64,000 bases of DNA from Penicillus capitatus (taxonomy: Eukaryota > Plantae > Chlorophyta): positions 434,001 through 498,000 of the forward strand of contig OZ287709.1 in NCBI GenBank assembly GCA_965649825.1. Direction: 5' to 3'. How positions within the stretch are numbered: position 1 is the stretch's first letter; each line of letters begins with the position of its first letter. Below are positions 8,407 to 62,265 of this stretch, one piece after another. The position numbers were made by a program, and so were the translations under genes. Under the pieces are notes generated by a model. It did not search any database. It was not told the origin of the DNA and saw nothing but the letters and a program-made list of their open reading frames with translations.

Positions 8407-9498
8407 ATGCATCAAGTGTCGTGGAGGCAGACAGGAATCTTTATTCTATGTCTGCTGTCGTCCCAAGCAACAGCAACTCGACTGGGATGGCAACAGCACC
8501 GTACACAAGTCTCTTCTCTCTGTCTTAACGCTGACCCACCCATGCAGTGACACGGCGTACATAGGAGCCAGAAGACGATGCACCTGTGCGAGATGTCAGA
8601 TTTGGCCAGGCCATGATGCAGGGTCTCGCAATGGTTGATTATGTGCAGCTGGGTATTAGAGGTGCTCATTTGTGCTCTTTTAGATTTTGGTTTCCGAAAT
8701 GGGAGATGAGACATTTATCATTGCTGCCATTCTGGCCATGAAGCATCCTCGTGCCGTGATTTTCCTTGGTGCCCTCACAGCATTGGCCGCAATGACGGTG
8801 GCTGTGCTGTTGTCGCTGATCTGGCTTTTCTCACACTATTGCTGGTGCTCAGGCTATTTCTGCGGCGCTTGGTGTTGTGGTACCATCCCTCATCAGTCCT
8901 GAACTCACACACCATGCAGCAACGGTATTGTACACGATCTTCGGGGCGCGTCTATTGTATGTTGCCTACAAATCGACAGAACACGAAACAGAGGTAGGCA
9001 ACACATGAAGACGAATACATCTTTCGTCGTTCTTTATCAGTCTGTTGCAGGAAGAGATCAAAGAAGTGGAAGGCAAACTCGCAGAGAGAAAAGAGCCGCC
9101 GAGCATGGCCAAACGGTGGCTGATGCGATTCTGTACACCAGTGCTACTGGAAGCATGTATACTGACCTTTGTTGCAGGTAATAACAGCATCCTACCTAAT
9201 CTCACTCTTTTTCCCTTATCCAGAGTGGGGAGATCGAAGTCAAATTGCCACCATCACGTTGGCATCGCACTTGGATCCCTTTGGCGTTACCATAGGAGCC
9301 ATTGCTGGTCACTCGATCTGCACAGGACTGGCTGTTGTCGGAGGTTGCACCGTTGTCTAATGCGACATCCGGAGATCCATCCATCCATCTCTGTTTGTAG
9401 GACAGCTCATCGCGATGAAGATATCACAACGGACAGCGGCACTATGTGGAAGTGCGTTGTTCTTTGCATTTGCTGTGCACAATTACGTATGGGGATAA
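8407..9498 (+). CDS. GDT1/TMEM165 (UPF0016) Ca/Mn transporter
   Basis: Two family motifs, [11 protein letters not shown] and [11 protein letters not shown]; stop TAA 9496-9498; 5' start uncertain. Confidence 0.9.
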
Positions 9499-9749
9499 GA
9501 CAATAAATTGCTTGAACCTTTATCTGTAACCTCTCCTGAGCAAGCATGTGCCGTGCTGCACAGCGGATTGTAAATGAGGGATGAAAAATGTGCTTCGTAG
9601 ATTCGCCAGATGAAGCGGGCATTCAAAAAGAAGGATCCTTTACAGACTGTAAGTCGAAGAATAATCCTGAAGATTAGACCCGCCTAAGATGAAATGGGGA
9701 GACAAAAAAAAAAGAATCCGCAGCCTTCATGTCTGTGTGCCAATTCCAT

Positions 9750-10573
9750 GAGTCTTGGAGAAATTCGATCAGGATCCAGCCGCAAGTACCAGACGGAGGC
9801 AGTTTGTGTGGTGCTGTTCAAGCTTGTCTCACAGAATGAACCTGTCAATGGTAATCTGTTTATACCCGACAGCGACTAGCACATATGCCATCACTCGATC
9901 CCTTGTCAAAAATCTCATCTTCCAAGCTCTTTTTTTGTTTACTGAACGATCGATCCCTTGGCAATTTTCTCGATCTTCTGTTTGGTCTTGTTCTTGTGTC
10001 TCAGTCCTTCTTGATGCTTTTGTTGCTCGTATTCTCGCTGGGTTGTATCTTACAGACCGTATCCATCGCCTTTGAGACCACCTTGGTACATAATACGGTC
10101 TAGAATCAGAATCTTCACAAGAATCTATGTCAAACCTCACAAGCCCAGAGGTAAACTCATAGAAGAGCGATGAATGACCTGGACCACCAAGACAGCAGGG
10201 ATGATGCAGAATTTTTGAGAGCTGTTGATTTCTGTCGACCATTCTGGCGTTGTACTTGTATCCAGTCGGGAATGTCTGGGCCACATTGACCACCGTCTCA
10301 AAGAATGAAGGGATCCACGTCACACCGTTCTCCAATATCTTCTCCCCGGCTGCATTGCGCTGACATCTCTCGCTGTTCTCGATCAGCACGTAGGGCAAAG
10401 TGCCTCCCTCCACAGCTTCCTTGCAGCTTCTCAAAAACTTCTTCCCTACAGCTTCTGCTTAGCTTCCTCGTAGTAGGTTTTAGCGCATCGTAGGAGGTAT
10501 TTAAGTCGCCGGTTAGGGTTTTCCGTTTTAACGTATATTGCCATTTGCTTTCTTCTTTGCTTTTGTCTAGCAT
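9750..10573 (-). pseudogene. Possible degenerate non-LTR (RTE-like) reverse transcriptase fragment
   Basis: ORF 9829-10434 has FLRSCKE...LPYVLI, KIL..G..P.FF..VV...F..G...ARMVD..QLS, and after the stop KLEQHHTNCLRLVL (cf. RTE KLExFHxxCLRxIL). No recognisable QG or YADD motif. Confidence 0.3.
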
Positions 10574-10714
10574 TTCCGCTCACAATTTACCGTAATTTCA
10601 GAAGTCCTCGAAGAAGGTAATTTTCTGTCCTGTGTGAAGCTTTTTCGAAGGTTGCTTTGCCAAGTTCATACGTGTCGGAGTCGACGCCGCTGAAAAATCT
10701 TCCTGCTTTCGAAG

Positions 10715-54267: not shown

Positions 54268-55980
54268 CTAGATTTTGCTTTGGACTGTCTTGAACGAGTC
54301 CACGATGGCATTGGCCAAATGCTCTGCTTTGCTGGAAGGCAGACCTGCCAAAGAGATACGGCCATCCTTTGTCATATAGACGTGATGTTTGTTGGTCATG
54401 TTCTCGACCTAGACAGACACACCAATAGAAGGATAAGTCGAATGGTCGAGAAGGGGGTATGGACCTGAGCAGGGGATAGACCAGTGAAGGAGAACATGCC
54501 GATCTGGGACGTTACAAATGTCCAGTCCTTGTCTGGCATGAGCTTGACGAGATGGTCGTAGAGCACTTTGCGAACATTCATAATACGTCCAGCCATTTGT
54601 TCCATCTCCATTTTCCAAGCATTGAAAAAGTCAGGGTTGCTGACCACTTCCGTAACGATGCGAGCGCCATGCACAGGAGGATTGGAGTAGATGGCACGCG
54701 CCAACTTCTTCAGCTGACTCAAGACACGGGGAGCAACCGCAGTGTCACTCACAACAAAGTTCAGTGCGCCGATGCGCTCAGCATAGAGTCCGAGATTTTT
54801 GGAGTAGGACTGCGCCACAATGACCTCAAGGCCCTTCTCGACGAAGAACCTCGGAGCGTAGGCGTCCTCCTCCAGCGATCCGGTGGCGAATCCCTGGTAG
54901 GCGACGTCGAAGAAAGGCAAGTGGTTCTTCTTCTGACAGAGATCGCAGATCTGAGACCACTGCTCCTTCGTCGGATCGATGCCCGTCGGATTGTGGGCGC
55001 AACCTTGAGGCAGACACACATGCGCACACATCCAATCTGCTGGCGACGTCTACCGTGCAGCAGGATCACCGATCCGTCGGGTGCGGCCTCGATGTCGGCG
55101 ACCATTCCCTCGAAGTCGAGTCCCGTTGTCTTGGGATCGAAGTATCGGTAGGACTTCCACGGCACCCCTGCGTCCGAGAAGATGGACTTGTGGTTTCCCC
55201 ACGTGGGATCGGAGAAGTAGATCGTCGTGTTTGGCATGAAGCGTTGAATGAAGGCTGCGCCCACACGCAAGGATCCGGTGCCCGACAGAGATTGGATCGT
55301 CACAATACGCCCCTACAATCTCACATCATGAGTTACCATCTCTATCCCAGTCCTTTCACCTCATTGAGGACGGGATTGCCATCTCCAAATAGCAAAGAGG
55401 CTGTCGCTTTCTTGAAAGCCGGCAGTCCGTCGATAGGCAGGTACTCTTTGTTCTCGCCCTTTTCCAACATCAGTTGTTCCGCCTATCGGAAATCCAATCG
55501 TCATGTACGTCATCTACCGACGCGTCGCTTACTTTCTTGACGACGTCCAGGACATAGGGCGTGAGCTCTTCCGTGCGGTAGGCGCCGACACCCAAGTTGA
55601 GTCTGTCGGGATGATCGTCGCGCTTGAACGCCTCGGTAACTCCGAGAATCGGGTCCGGCGGCGCTTGCTCAACGGATTCGAGTTTCGATGTCATGGTGAG
55701 TGAAGCGCGAACAGCGAAAGAACGGCGCGAACGGACAGTAGGTCGAACACGTTTTGTCTTCAGAGACAGGCACGCCTGCACGTACACACCACGTTGCCAA
55801 GCGTCACCCGGAATCCGACACGGAAAGATCGTCAAACTCGAATTCAAGAACGTTCCGCAACGTAGCAGCGTCAAGTAGACAAAGGAAAGATGAGAAAAAA
55901 CTGAACGTTGTGCAAACACTTACGCGTTTGTGCTGAGCAGTCGGCGCCGGAATTCGAGTAGCGAGCATGAAAGACGACAT
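54268..55980 (-). CDS. ASP5: Aspartate aminotransferase, plastid type (ASP5-like), catalytically intact
   Basis: Transit peptide; APPDPILG; LGVGAYR; SGTGSL; CAHNPTG; FDVAYQG; [12 protein letters not shown]; DGRISLAG. Confidence 0.95.
54801..55282. repeat. 482-nt segment ~98% identical to 57628-58109 (direct, offset 2827)
   Basis: Manual alignment: no indels, 8 substitutions, intron identical. Confidence 0.95.
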
Positions 55981-56091
55981 CTTTTCAGCGAACCCGACTA
56001 AATGCGATTGAAACCGACGACGGCTTGAGTTTCTGCACGTACCAACAGATTTAACCGCATGTCGAACGCTAGATCAGCGCGTGGAAGACGC

Positions 56092-56789
56092 ATGTTCCAT
56101 GCCCTTTGGCGACGTGGCCGCCGTCCGTCGCACCTTTTTCCTGATCATGTATCGCAATTTTGTTCAAGTTTCGTTCAATGGGGGTTGTGAGTGGAGAGGG
56201 GAAAGACGACTCTGGTCTCGACGGTTCAAGGTTGCCGCGGTGAGGAGTCAGGGTCACCAACTGACCGTATCGACTTTGAAAGGCCGCTCAAAGTACCGCC
56301 TGTCCTGCCAGACTGAAGAAAAGGGCGACAGAATTGACCTCTACGATGCAGCACTGAACTGCGCCAGACGATGTCAGTACAATACTGCCCAATCCCTTTT
56401 CGAGGAGCTGTTAGCAACTGACCCACACCTCTGCAAAGCATGGGTGTCTTATGCCCAAGCATGTCATCATCATCATTGCGCTGATTGAGATGTCGTTGGT
56501 GTAGATGATGCGACGTTGTTTTCAAGATGATGTTCATGAGGCTTATGACTATCCTCGGCGCATTTTGCAGCGCGGTATGCAGATCAATCCTCACAGTGGA
56601 TGTCTAGCACAGGCATGGGGACTGTTGGAGCTTCGGAGAGGCAACAGTCGCGGTGCTGTGAATCTATTGGAGAGATCCGTCATACTCGATCCGTCTTGTT
56701 CGCCTGTGCTTAAGTGGAATCCTGTCCAGAAAGCCAAAGAGAACATAGGACCCAGAAAAAAGAAAGTCGGCAAGAGAATGAAGCAATAG
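56092..56789 (+). CDS. Small HAT/TPR-repeat protein, probably organellar
   Basis: AQSLFEELL..DP...KAWVSYAQ; ILQRG..INP....LAQAWGLLELRRGN...A..LLERSV.LDP; start uncertain. Confidence 0.75.
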
Positions 56790-57082: not shown

Positions 57083-58852
57083 TCAAGCAGAATTGTAGAC
57101 GATCATCTTATCTTGTACGCATCTGATCGTAGCAACGATGACTTCGGCAACGTGCTCTGTCGCATCCAGAGATAGGGCTGTCAATGTCAGAACACCATCG
57201 GCACCAAAATACACACGGTCTTTATCTTTTAGAAGGCGGACCTAGTGACAACATAGTCTATGGATTGATTAAGTGATGCGTGACACAGCACCTGGAAGGA
57301 AGAAAATCCAATAAACAGGTATATTCCACGCTGAGAGGACAAGTATGACCAATCCCGATTTGGCATCAATCGCCAAAGGTGATAGCAGATTTTTTCACGG
57401 ACATTTCGGATGCGTTGATGCATGATTTTCAGAGCAGTCTTCCATTGTGCAAACAATTCAGGGTCATTCATGACCTCTGTGACATGTCGACTACCGTGAA
57501 CAGGAGGAAATGCATACATGGGACGTGTCAAGAGCAACAGCTGGCTCTTTATACGATTGATCACTGCACTGTCGTCCATCACAAAAATCAGTCCTCCAAC
57601 ACAGTCCCTGCCAAGTCCCAGATTCACGGAGTAGGACTGTGCTACAATGACCTCAAGGCCCTTCTCGACGAAGAATCTCGGAGCGTAGGCGTCCTCCTCC
57701 AGCGATCCGGTGGCGAATCCCTGGTAGGCGACGTCGAAGAAAGGCAAGTGGTTCTTCTTCTGACAGAGATCGCAGATCTGAGACCACTGCTCCTTCGTCG
57801 GATCGATGCCCGTCGGATTGTGGGCGCACCCTTGAGGCAGACACACATGCGCACACATCCAATCTGCTGGCGACGTCTACCGTGCAGCAGGATCACCGAT
57901 CCGTCGGGTGCGGCCTCGATGTCGGCGACCATTCCCTCGAAGTCAAGTCCCGTTGTCTTTGGATCGAAGTATCGGTAGGACTTCCACGGCACCCCTGCGT
58001 CCGAGAAGATGGACTTGTGGTTTCCCCACGTGGGATCGGAGAAATAGATCGTCGTGTTTGGCATGAAGCGTTGAATGAAGGCTGCCCCCACACGCAAGGA
58101 TCCGGTGCCAGAGGGTGTTTGTACAGATAAAGCACGTCCCTACATGACATTTTATCATCATCGCTCTCGTTGAATGTGCGCAGTTAAACGACTTTATGCA
58201 ATGCATTCGAATCTTTCCCTAGGACAAGCTCAAGTGTCAGTCTGTTGAATAGAGGAGAACCGTCGAGCTGAGTGTATTCTTTGTCAAGTCCCTTCTTGAA
58301 GATTCTATCATCCGTTCTCTGCGCGAATCGTAGAGAGGCAATGTCAATTGCTGCAAGAAACAACGAAGGCACAACTCGGTGCAAGACGTTCATTTCGCGT
58401 GGTAGCGATTGTTGAGTATGCGTGTCTTCATCAGCTACGACTCCTCGCTTTGCTATATCCTCCCCGTTTGTGTCCAGGGCCCTTCCTATATTCGATGTCG
58501 GCCGAATAAACATTGCAAAGTAAGAGTCGGTCGGGGAAAACGTCGACTTCGTCGCATCGCTGTCCCATCAAAGACAAAAATATTGAAGAGACGAACGCGT
58601 TCAACTGACAGTCAAATTGACGAGCAATGCGCTCATCTGATAGAATAGCCAACTATGCGCGTTGTTTGCAATGTGTCTGAAAGAGTCCGCGCAGGCAAGA
58701 CCCTCAGCGGTTTGTTTGATCCCACTTCTGCCACCAGGGCAATATCTCCCTCTCGTCTCTTCTTGAGTCGAGAGGGAGAAGATAACGTAGTAACATGAAT
58801 AACAAGCATCCACGATAAGACCATCATCCATCTCGCCAGAGGATTGCCTCAT
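57083..58852 (-). CDS. Divergent AspAT paralogue lacking the PLP lysine (putative pseudoenzyme)
   Basis: SYSVNLGLGRDC replaces [12 protein letters not shown]; DGVLTLTA replaces DGRISLAG; four intron positions match ASP5; frame open from ~58513 to TGA at 57085-57083; N-terminal exons unresolved. Confidence 0.85.
57628..58109. repeat. Second copy of the 482-nt near-identical AspAT segment
   Basis: See 54801-55282. Confidence 0.95.
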
Positions 58853-59177: not shown

Positions 59178-60290
59178 ATGAATGAAGTGCATATGCCGTT
59201 GTCGATAAAACCTGACAATTGCTGTTGTGTTTGCCATAGTTTGAACAGATTTCATTAATTGGTGCCGGAACATATGGCAAGGTCTTCCGTGCCGTGCGGC
59301 GCGTCGATGGACGTCTCGTTGCGATCAAGAAGGTCAAAACGCGTCGCGATGCCGGCGTCCACAGCACAACAATCCGCGAAATCGGCATCCTAAAACAGCT
59401 CCATCACCCCAACATCGTCAGGCACGCTCTACAGTCAACTAACTCTCTTGACCCCTTGTGGCCCCAGTCTTCTGCAGATCATTCCACAGTCCAAGAGCAT
59501 ACTCATTGTCATGGAACACATGGAATGCGATTTGAGACACTTTATCGCACATCGATCTGCCGCCATTAACGATGTGTTCATCAAAGTAGGGGCCAACAGT
59601 GTAGAACGATGCCCGTGAGGATCTCTTACTGCGCAGAGAGTGATGTTTCAATTGGTCCAAGGATTGGCTTATCTGCATTCCAAACGCATCTTGCATCGAG
59701 ATCTGAAGTCGCAGAACATTCTACTAGATCCCTCTACAGTAGTCGCCAAGATCGCCGATTTTGGACTGGCCAGAACATTCAGTCTGCCATCCAGAGCTTA
59801 CACACATGAAGTTGTGACGCTGTGGTATCGTGCGCCCGAGATACTGATGGGTATGGAGACCTACAGTTGTGCCATTGATGTCTGGTCTCTTGGCTGCATC
59901 TTTGCTGAGCTGACGTCTGGCTGCCCTCCCTTTCGTGGCGATTCCGAGATCGACCAAATGCTGAAAATCTTTGAGGTTCTCGGAACACCGACAGCAGCAG
60001 TTTGGCCTGGCGTCCAGGATTTACCGTTTGACATCGACCAATGTCCACAGTGGCAGGCCAAATCGTTAAGAACGATCATGCATGTGCCAGATCCTCAGGC
60101 ATTGGATCTGCTTGGCAAGATGCTCCATTATGACCCCAGAAAACGCATCTCTGCTGCAGATGCCATTCACCATCCCTTCTTTTCCAATCTTAAGTCTGAT
60201 GTACCAGATCGAACATTACAACCCACAACACTGGCAAATAGAAATCACACATGTTTACCTGGTGTCACACTTTGCTCACACAAGAACTAG
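59178..60290 (+). CDS. CDK1/CDKA-like cyclin-dependent kinase with atypical HSTTIRE helix
   Basis: MNE|FEQISLIGAGTYG, VAIKK, GVHSTTIRE, HRDLKSQN, ADFGLAR, YTHEVVTLWYRAPE, GDSEIDQ. Confidence 0.92.
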
Positions 60291-61986: not shown

Positions 61987-62110
61987 GCGGAATTGTGTGA
62001 TTAACTGGGCATCGGTGTGATTCTACACTGAAGCTCTACTGTCCGGGACAACTCTTCCTGGAAACAAAGAGAGTTAACTGTTATGAATCCGTCTTCATTA
62101 TCTTGGCCAC
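61987..62110 (+). repeat. Conserved leader homologous to 15045-15170 (inverted)
   Basis: aactgggcatcg.tgtgattc...aaacaaagagagttaactgttatgaatc.gtcttc shared. Confidence 0.9.
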
Positions 62111-62265
62111 AACGTTTGTCGTTTCGCTGCCCACGAACAACGTTTGTCGTTTCGCTGCCCACGAACAACGTTTGTCGTTTCGCTGCCCACGAACAACGTT
62201 TGTCGTTTCGCTGCCCACGAACAACGTTTGTCGTTTCGCTGCCCACGAACAACGTTTGTCGTTTC
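62111..62265. repeat. Perfect 28-bp minisatellite, 5.5 copies
   Basis: Unit aacgtttgtcgtttcgctgcccacgaac. Confidence 0.99.

Follow-up and report, generated by a model that had tools for sequence, protein, structure and literature searches.

A probable conserved pseudoenzyme of the aspartate aminotransferase family whose core is copied from its active neighbor

Introduction

Dead enzyme paralogues are common, and aspartate aminotransferase (AspAT) is among the best understood of the enzymes that use pyridoxal phosphate (PLP). The 64-kb stretch of DNA analyzed here (the window) is eukaryotic and has a tandem pair of AspAT paralogues, both on the minus strand and arranged head to tail. Gene A is an intact AspAT gene, and gene B, located about 1.1 kb upstream of it, has no codon for the catalytic lysine. 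The locus raises the question of whether B is a decaying pseudogene, a subunit that helps to build an active site together with the product of A, or a protein conserved for something other than catalysis. A sequence-only reading of the window had proposed the second course, in which B, with its own site dead and the residues that complete a partner's site kept, would pair with its active neighbor. Here the exon structure, residues and divergence of B are compared with those of A and of the copies in other genomes.

Results

The tandem pair and its copies in other genomes

The active member of the pair occupies a single interval.

54268–55980, minus strand: gene A, an intact plastid-type AspAT gene with six exons and a transit-peptide-like N-terminus

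Its introns are 47–148 nt long, its presequence is rich in Ser and Arg, and every catalytic residue of active AspATs is present, as the sequence-only reading had assumed of the neighbor. The top named relatives of A are AspATs of Caulerpa lentillifera, followed by those of Ostreobium and Bryopsis, which makes a green alga of bryopsidalean type the probable host; the alga is represented in samples ERZ25074695 and ERZ26696514. When ORFs between B and A and the candidate first exon of B were searched against Pfam, nothing significant was found. Antisense ORFs over exon 5 of B (57379–57978), with a twin over exon 5 of A, were judged to be by-products of codon bias.

B is present in a second assembly (L001), which is 99.5% identical to the window and represents another haplotype or strain. 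A related species (L003/L004) has about 81% DNA identity to the window and the same gene order, and its orthologous B occurs in two 99.5%-identical copies with an LTR retrotransposon between them. This doubling could reflect either a genuine, recent duplication event or duplicated haplotypes. The orthologue has V258, C266, F297 and Ala386; its four exons, GT-AG sites and stop position match those of the window, and its frame is intact. A more distant relative (L005) has the flanking genes in common and one AspAT gene, with no trace of B, so either that lineage, at least, can do without B, or B arose after the split. An assembly artefact was ruled out because the structure is identical in three independent assemblies.

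A word-indexed search for further orthologues of B returned a single orthologue besides the ORF of the window itself, and two metagenome scans returned none. An exhaustive search of representative proteins uncovered gene C, described below, and found no family closer to B. Among the collections searched, there were no RNA-derived contigs of this species.

Exon structure and 5′ end of gene B

The conserved exons of B span 58318–57083 on the minus strand, with 361 codons and no stop over four exons, in agreement with the roughly 350 stop-free C-terminal codons counted earlier. They are given here with two segments upstream of them, numbered after the exons of A.

57083–57241, minus strand: last exon of B, ending with a TGA stop at 57085–57083, the position of which is kept in the related species
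57292–57830, minus strand: exon 5 of B, 539 nt, equal in length in genes A and C
57881–58139, minus strand: exon 4 of B, 259 nt, equal in length in genes A and C, with G108/T109 and W140
58190–58318, minus strand: exon 3 of B, the most 5′ exon to show clear coding constraint, with Y70 inside
58376–58513, minus strand: putative first coding exon of B, with ATG at 58513 and 46 codons, joined to exon 3 via a 57-nt intron
58431–58652, minus strand: relic of the ancestral exon 2, with PDRLLLCNVYS, in a frame that differs from the rest of B

Four GT-AG introns had been placed at ancestral positions by the sequence-only reading, and each has its counterpart in A. Three of them, 50 nt each, are at the exact positions of introns 3–5 of A, and the fourth, 57 nt long (58375–58319), is at the position of intron 2 of A and is kept in the related species, where its counterpart is 55 nt long.

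The predicted protein matches Pfam PF00155 (E = 1.6e-59, 202 bits with a cut-off of 19.7), and AspATs in PDB match it at E = 7e-91. An AF2 model has a pLDDT of 84 and a pTM of 0.85, with residues 1–36 disordered, and its TM-scores to solved AspATs are 0.81–0.85.

The first 52 codons of B, which take in exon 3 and the beginning of exon 4, differ between species at 5/6/22 first, second and third positions. The orthologue has an in-frame TAA just upstream of the exon 3 acceptor, so exon 3 cannot run further 5′. As for the putative first exon, its ATG and frame are conserved in the orthologue with a 3-nt indel, and its 3′ end (HTQQSLPREMNVLHR) resembles the 3′ end of exon 2 of A. The exon has no codon periodicity, with 10/14/15 differences by position in a hand count on the interspecies alignment, and in the second haplotype its frame is shifted by 4 nt inserted at 58488. 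The disordered residues 1–36 of the AF2 model fall in this exon, too. All genomes compared share an alternative start ATG at 58393.

The relic of exon 2 has 71% interspecies identity with three gap openings of 1, 4 and 3 nt, and its PDRL motif is absent in the orthologue. Because of the 1- and 4-nt indels, the relic is probably no longer coding, and its non-triplet indels and non-coding-like identity rule out the frame 58652–58431 as a coding exon. The degraded LGVGAYR region noted earlier is thus real as the remains of an ancestral exon, but it lies outside the frame of B and probably outside its coding sequence. The 5′ limit of 58852 given with it did not hold, as the ATG there and its ORF are unconserved in the related species. 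Whichever start is taken, B is without the first ~55 residues of AspAT, among them the N-terminal arm, the beginning of the small domain and the LGVGAYR region. In the predicted B protein no transit peptide was recognizable, unlike in gene A.

Loss of catalytic residues

Residue numbering was fixed by alignment to solved AspAT structures. Position 258 of B is Val (GTG at 57627–57625), where A has AAA, and in the alignment with mitochondrial AspAT it reads qsysVnlgl against QSYAKNMGL. R266 is replaced by Cys (TGT at 57603–57601), S296/N297 by Ala/Phe (57513–57508), and R386 by Val in the window (GTT at 57193–57191) and by Ala in the orthologue. Each of these replacements had been named in the sequence-only reading, and all stand against the solved AspATs and gene A; Y263 and F360 are lost as well. 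Among 196 fetched homologues, K258 and R266 are absent only from B's own ORF. Val at 258 was found in all four B copies, namely in the window, the second haplotype and both orthologous copies.

Two residues that act across the AspAT dimer, Y70 (TAC at 58276–58274) and R292 (CGT at 57525–57523), are retained in the window copy as had been reported. Y70 is present in all four B copies and R292 in three, since one copy in the related species has Leu at 292 and the other Arg. The cofactor-pocket residues G108/T109, W140, N194, D222, Y225 and S255 are all present in B, with SGTGS of the window being SGTCS in the orthologue. Exon 5 alone carries N194, D222, Y225, S255, V258, C266, R292 and A296/F297.

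Judged from its residues, the B protein would be dead as an aspartate aminotransferase (EC 2.6.1.1, subgroup I-alpha), because V258, in place of the Schiff-base lysine, can form no internal aldimine, and R266C and R386V/A remove the arginines that bind the cofactor phosphate and the alpha-carboxylate, respectively. The earlier claim that B could not transaminate by itself is borne out to the same extent, and the catalytic losses, read from the states found in both species, had already occurred by the time of their common ancestor.

A core overwritten by gene A

When B was aligned to A by blastn, only one internal segment aligned.

57614–58112, minus strand: gene-conversion tract in B, 499 bp, 97.4% identical to 55285–54787 of gene A
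54787–55285, minus strand: donor of the tract in gene A, the counterpart of 57614–58112 of gene B

The tract covers 144 codons, approximately residues 107–257, which is the core of the cofactor-binding large domain. In the window, A and B differ in the tract by 9 synonymous and 0 nonsynonymous changes, and the 50-nt intron within it (57880–57831) is 100% identical to that of A. Outside it, B is ~50% identical to A in DNA, protein identity is 33% on the N side and 43% on the C side, and synonymous sites are saturated. Such saturation prevents the duplication from being dated by synonymous sites, with 4-fold differences of 0.68 between A and B and 0.65 between A and the distant relative.

Of 21 informative sites in the tract, 19 unite the A and B of each species and one unites the orthologues. 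The tract has equal edges in the two species, with A–B identities of 97.9% and 97.5%, and an 8-nt intron indel is shared within the A–B pair of each species. Around the tract intron, a 200-nt stretch has zero A–B differences, which suggests a more recent conversion event. At the polymorphic position 55217 in A, the other haplotype carries the base of B. This pattern shows that the central 144 codons of B have been overwritten by A repeatedly, independently in each species and with equal edges.

The V258 codon (57625–57627) is at the 3′ edge of the tract, and both codon and boundary are identical in the related species. The tract probably halts at codon 258 because homology ends there, in which case the boundary would be self-maintaining. 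Selection against restoration of the lysine is possible, yet it would not be needed to explain the boundary.

Because the tract is copied from A, its zero dN was rejected as a signal of selection on B (55217, where A shares the B state, also bears on this), and its perfect pocket residues are uninformative about what B needs.

Selection outside the tract

dN/dS (ω) was computed outside the conversion tract between the window B and the orthologue of the related species, so that ω is an average over two lineages, coming from a single interspecies comparison. The B flanks have dN of 0.17, dS of 0.65 and ω of 0.26 (bootstrap interval 0.18–0.37), which differs from ω = 1 with a Fisher p of about 2e-12. 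The comparison with an orthologue had been put forward in the sequence-only reading as a check, and its outcome is well below 1. With the same species pair, ω of gene A is 0.03.

Differences in the B flanks by codon position are 39/31/71 (chi-square p of 7e-5), and the divergence is 0.16 at 0-fold sites and 0.35 at 4-fold sites. Between species, the introns and flanking DNA of the locus diverge at about 0.2–0.38, with 0.29–0.38 for local non-coding DNA. A single gap opening, of 3 nt, falls in the flank exons (651 nt), versus ten in the 640 nt upstream; this gap is in frame, lies in the last exon and is the sole exonic indel between species. With 7–10 openings expected, the Poisson probability of seeing one is 0.0004–0.007. 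In neutral simulations, a stop-free frame survives in only 0.3–1.2% of runs. None of the four B copies has a stop or frameshift in exons 3–6 or has lost a splice site; only the region of the former exon 2 behaves neutrally.

Among 55 flank positions that are invariant in the family, 29 are kept in both species and 20 are replaced in both. Because these replacements are mostly to the identical residue, the new states of B are themselves conserved.

Judged from these divergences, the B flanks have been under purifying selection since the common ancestor of the two species, about tenfold weaker than that on A. The constraint acted on an already dead protein, because both species share V258 and C266. 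Thus, the flank ω of 0.26, the one in-frame indel, and the conserved splice sites and frame mark B as a selected gene rather than a decaying pseudogene.

Within species, B varies mostly by amino-acid changes, albeit with small numbers. B of the second haplotype has 2 nonsynonymous changes and 1 synonymous change relative to the window in addition to its 4-nt insertion, and gene A has five SNPs there, all synonymous. Between the two B copies of the related species, the flanks have 3 nonsynonymous and 2 synonymous differences. The amino-acid-changing variants in B fit weak or recently relaxed constraint.

Gene C, a probable sister

Gene C, at an unlinked locus, was modeled from P0200, an ORF of the sample that also gave the second haplotype but on a different contig. 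The tetranucleotide signature of that contig correlates with that of the window at r = 0.94–0.95, as the halves of the window do with each other. The model of C is complete with 404 residues, its introns are at the positions of those of A and B, and its exons 4 and 5 are equal in length to theirs.

Like B, gene C is without the AspAT N-terminus. It keeps Y70, K258, R266 and R386 and has lost T109, W140, N194, Y225, R292 (Thr) and N297. In the flanks, B and C cluster with 98% NJ bootstrap and have 12 of 41 derived residues in common. A divergent Caulerpa paralogue (g6320), located four gene models from the AspAT gene g6316, joins the two. This grouping may partly be long-branch attraction, and from the alignments C is a probable sister of B. 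As the sister gene has lost several cofactor-binding residues, the intact pocket of B is most simply a by-product of conversion.

Provided that the grouping holds, B and C would be members of a small group of truncated AspAT-like proteins in this algal lineage that have lost their active sites in different ways, and decay along different routes would point to a function that needs neither catalysis nor cofactor.

Discussion

With a probability of roughly 0.72, we take B to be a lineage-specific, protein-coding and catalytically dead paralogue that arose from the plastid-type AspAT lineage of A and is conserved as a conversion mosaic. The product is predicted from the model to fold as an AspAT that is short of its N-terminal arm and of the start of the small domain. 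Its role would be non-catalytic, most likely protein binding through the large-domain surface of AspAT, and it might act as a homodimer or together with another AspAT-type subunit.

Three other explanations were weighed. The first is that B heterodimerizes with A and supplies Y70 and R292 in trans, making an enzyme that is half active or altered in specificity. In AspAT, each active site takes residues from both subunits, with Y70 and R292 acting on the site of the partner. The large-domain core of B, protein-identical to A through conversion, would make much of its dimer surface match that of A. Y70 is kept in gene C too, and the fold type has a precedent in LCB1, a subunit without the PLP lysine that is paired with LCB2 (PMC3794620). 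Residue 292, however, is variable among the B copies and is Thr in C. Since B has kept 29 of the 55 invariant flank positions anyway, the retention of two particular residues is at chance level, and it carries no signal of a partner-completing role, contrary to what the sequence-only reading had drawn from it. The N-terminal arm of AspAT clasps the partner subunit and stabilizes dimers, and B is without it. A has a plastid-type presequence and no transit peptide is visible in B, so their products may end up in different compartments. With R292 unconserved, the arm and the transit peptide missing, and two residues kept as expected by chance, we regard such an enzyme as unlikely.

Even so, the conversion-matched large-domain surface invites a more speculative and rather doubtful thought, that B, and possibly C, would be a dedicated non-catalytic partner of the plastid AspAT, forming a half-site heterodimer. 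If this were true, recombination rather than selection at the level of residues would maintain the fit of an enzyme with its dead regulator.

The second explanation is that B is a decaying pseudogene whose open frame is upheld by repeated conversion from A plus chance. Its catalytic residues are gone, the ancestral exon 2 is frameshifted with a degenerate N-terminus, the candidate first exon has a 4-nt indel polymorphism, SNPs in B are mostly nonsynonymous, and the more distant syntenic relative has no B; the zero dN in the tract is explained by copying. However, conversion misses the flanks, and it is there that ω is 0.26, the differences are three-periodic, and the single indel is in frame. 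Splice sites kept in four copies and B-specific replacements conserved between species also argue against decay, which leaves this explanation improbable.

The third, that B is an active enzyme with new chemistry or a non-covalently held cofactor, or else a PLP/PMP-binding sensor or buffer acting through W140, N194, D222, Y225 and S255, is very improbable: every pocket residue of the central tract is present and AspAT mutants at lysine 258 have been crystallized (e.g., K258H, entry 1AKA), but those residues derive from the copying of A rather than from a demonstrable need of B, R266, Y263, N297, F360 and R386 are also lost, gene C has lost T109, W140, N194 and Y225, and the N-terminal piece of the small domain, which closes the site, is absent.

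The preferred reading, a conserved and non-catalytic mosaic, makes B a pseudoenzyme paralogue, which is a known kind, here combined with partial concerted evolution. It stands out as a clean and unusual case of evolution: catalysis was clearly lost before the period of measurable purifying selection, and B is a natural chimera in which the core is continually replaced by A and the segments with the dead residues evolve separately. B is useful for asking what a non-catalytic AspAT fold does, and also how gene conversion shapes a pseudoenzyme beside its parent.

Plant PDX1.2 and the trypanosomatid AdoMetDC prozyme are dead paralogues retained by selection, with a demonstrated regulatory partnership with the active paralogue. 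They differ from B in fold, and for B a partnership is only proposed. A likeness is also found in serine palmitoyltransferase, in which LCB1 and LCB2 are fold-type I PLP enzymes and the lysine-less paralogue is conserved as in B. LCB1 has lost the PLP lysine and other catalytic residues, yet it is conserved, and it is thought to function next to the active subunit, the dimer of the two having only one active site (PMC3794620). The LCB1–LCB2 partnership is experimentally established, ancient and essential, whereas B is limited to a narrow algal lineage with a partner that is only proposed. Unlike LCB1, B lacks its N-terminal part, and conversion keeps one segment of it identical to the active gene.

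The nearest case in the literature is mammalian GOT1L1, which like B is a divergent AspAT-family paralogue of doubtful enzymatic role. Recombinant GOT1L1 has no aspartate racemase activity (PMC4282708), and a structural role in the central apparatus of sperm has been proposed for it (PMC12297659). It comes from an unrelated animal duplication, and no gene-conversion mosaic has been reported for GOT1L1. A literature search for a conserved lysine-less AspAT paralogue or an AspAT pseudoenzyme found nothing relevant.

As in other tandem duplicates under partial concerted evolution, one segment of B is near-identical to A including introns, the flanks diverge, and homogenization is species-wise. 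What differs from the usual case is that the recipient is dead and that the tract is the cofactor-binding core, ending at the codon of the catalytic lysine in both species.

Incidentally, two more predicted AspAT-like proteins resemble B in being without K258, although they are uncharacterized, come from unrelated lineages and are no orthologues of B. One is a metagenome protein (P0210) with K258R, N194D and R386K, and the other is an ankyrin-repeat fusion of the gall wasp Belonocnema kinseyi (P0219, XP_033222937) with K258N and R266Q.

Genes and ORFs around B

Gene B, the catalytically dead neighbour of the intact aspartate aminotransferase (AspAT) gene A, lies among the following features of the window.

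56081-56789, + strand: two adjoining ORFs between B and A, with a weak TPR/HAT-like look
59294-60290, + strand: CDK-like Ser/Thr kinase gene, divergently transcribed from B
62109-62265: perfect tandem repeat of a 28-bp unit, 5.6 copies, within overlapping ORFs

When the two ORFs at 56081-56789 were searched against Pfam, they matched TPR_14 with an E value of 0.098, which falls short of the cut-off. This segment is kept in the related species and has no counterpart in L005, the more distant relative with the same flanking genes and a single AspAT; it arose jointly with B. The kinase gene, conserved in both L003 (the related species with orthologous B) and L005, marks the gene that originally adjoined the lone AspAT.

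Two copies of the B unit in a related species

L003 contains two copies of a 2.9-kb B-bearing unit that are 99.5% identical to each other. Upstream of the second one, an LTR retrotransposon with gag-protease, RT and integrase has integrated.

L003 8382-11263: B unit, one copy
L003 11247-11731 + 17194-19595: B unit, the other copy
L003 11730-11892 and 17031-17193: LTRs of the retrotransposon

Residue 292 is Leu in one B copy and Arg in the other. The doubled unit may be a genuine recent duplication or a haplotype duplication of the assembly.

Gene C and other divergent AspAT-like proteins

A third AspAT-like gene, gene C, was found on another contig.

L006 (ENA ERZ25074695 ctg340446_32x) 8982-10645: gene C, 404-residue model

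Its introns occupy the positions of those of A and B, and its model lacks the AspAT N-terminus. K258, R266, and R386 are all retained, while T109, W140, N194, Y225, R292, and N297 are missing. Gene C probably comes from the same source organism as the window, according to its tetranucleotide signature (r = 0.94-0.95).

Caulerpa lentillifera has a strongly divergent AspAT-like paralogue, P0209 (g6320), four gene models from its normal AspAT, P0003 (g6316). In P0209, the LGVGAYR motif is degraded and R292 is replaced by Ser with K258 retained, and it clusters with B and C in the tree of B's flanks outside the gene-conversion tract. The Schiff-base lysine that B lacks is also absent from two further AspAT-like predictions: P0219 of the gall wasp Belonocnema kinseyi (XP_033222937), an ankyrin-repeat fusion with K258N and R266Q, and the JGI metagenome protein P0210, with K258R, N194D, and R386K.

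Differences between haplotypes

At codon 173 of gene A (window 55217), a silent polymorphism was observed, and the other haplotype of A has B's base there, which is consistent with exchange between A and B in either direction. In L001, the second haplotype or strain, a 4-nt insertion relative to the window at 58488 (GGAA duplication) shifts the frame of B's candidate first exon. The 28-bp array aligns with L001 at several 28-bp offsets, with an 11-nt gap inside the array; the multiple-offset alignment suggests that its copy number differs in L001.
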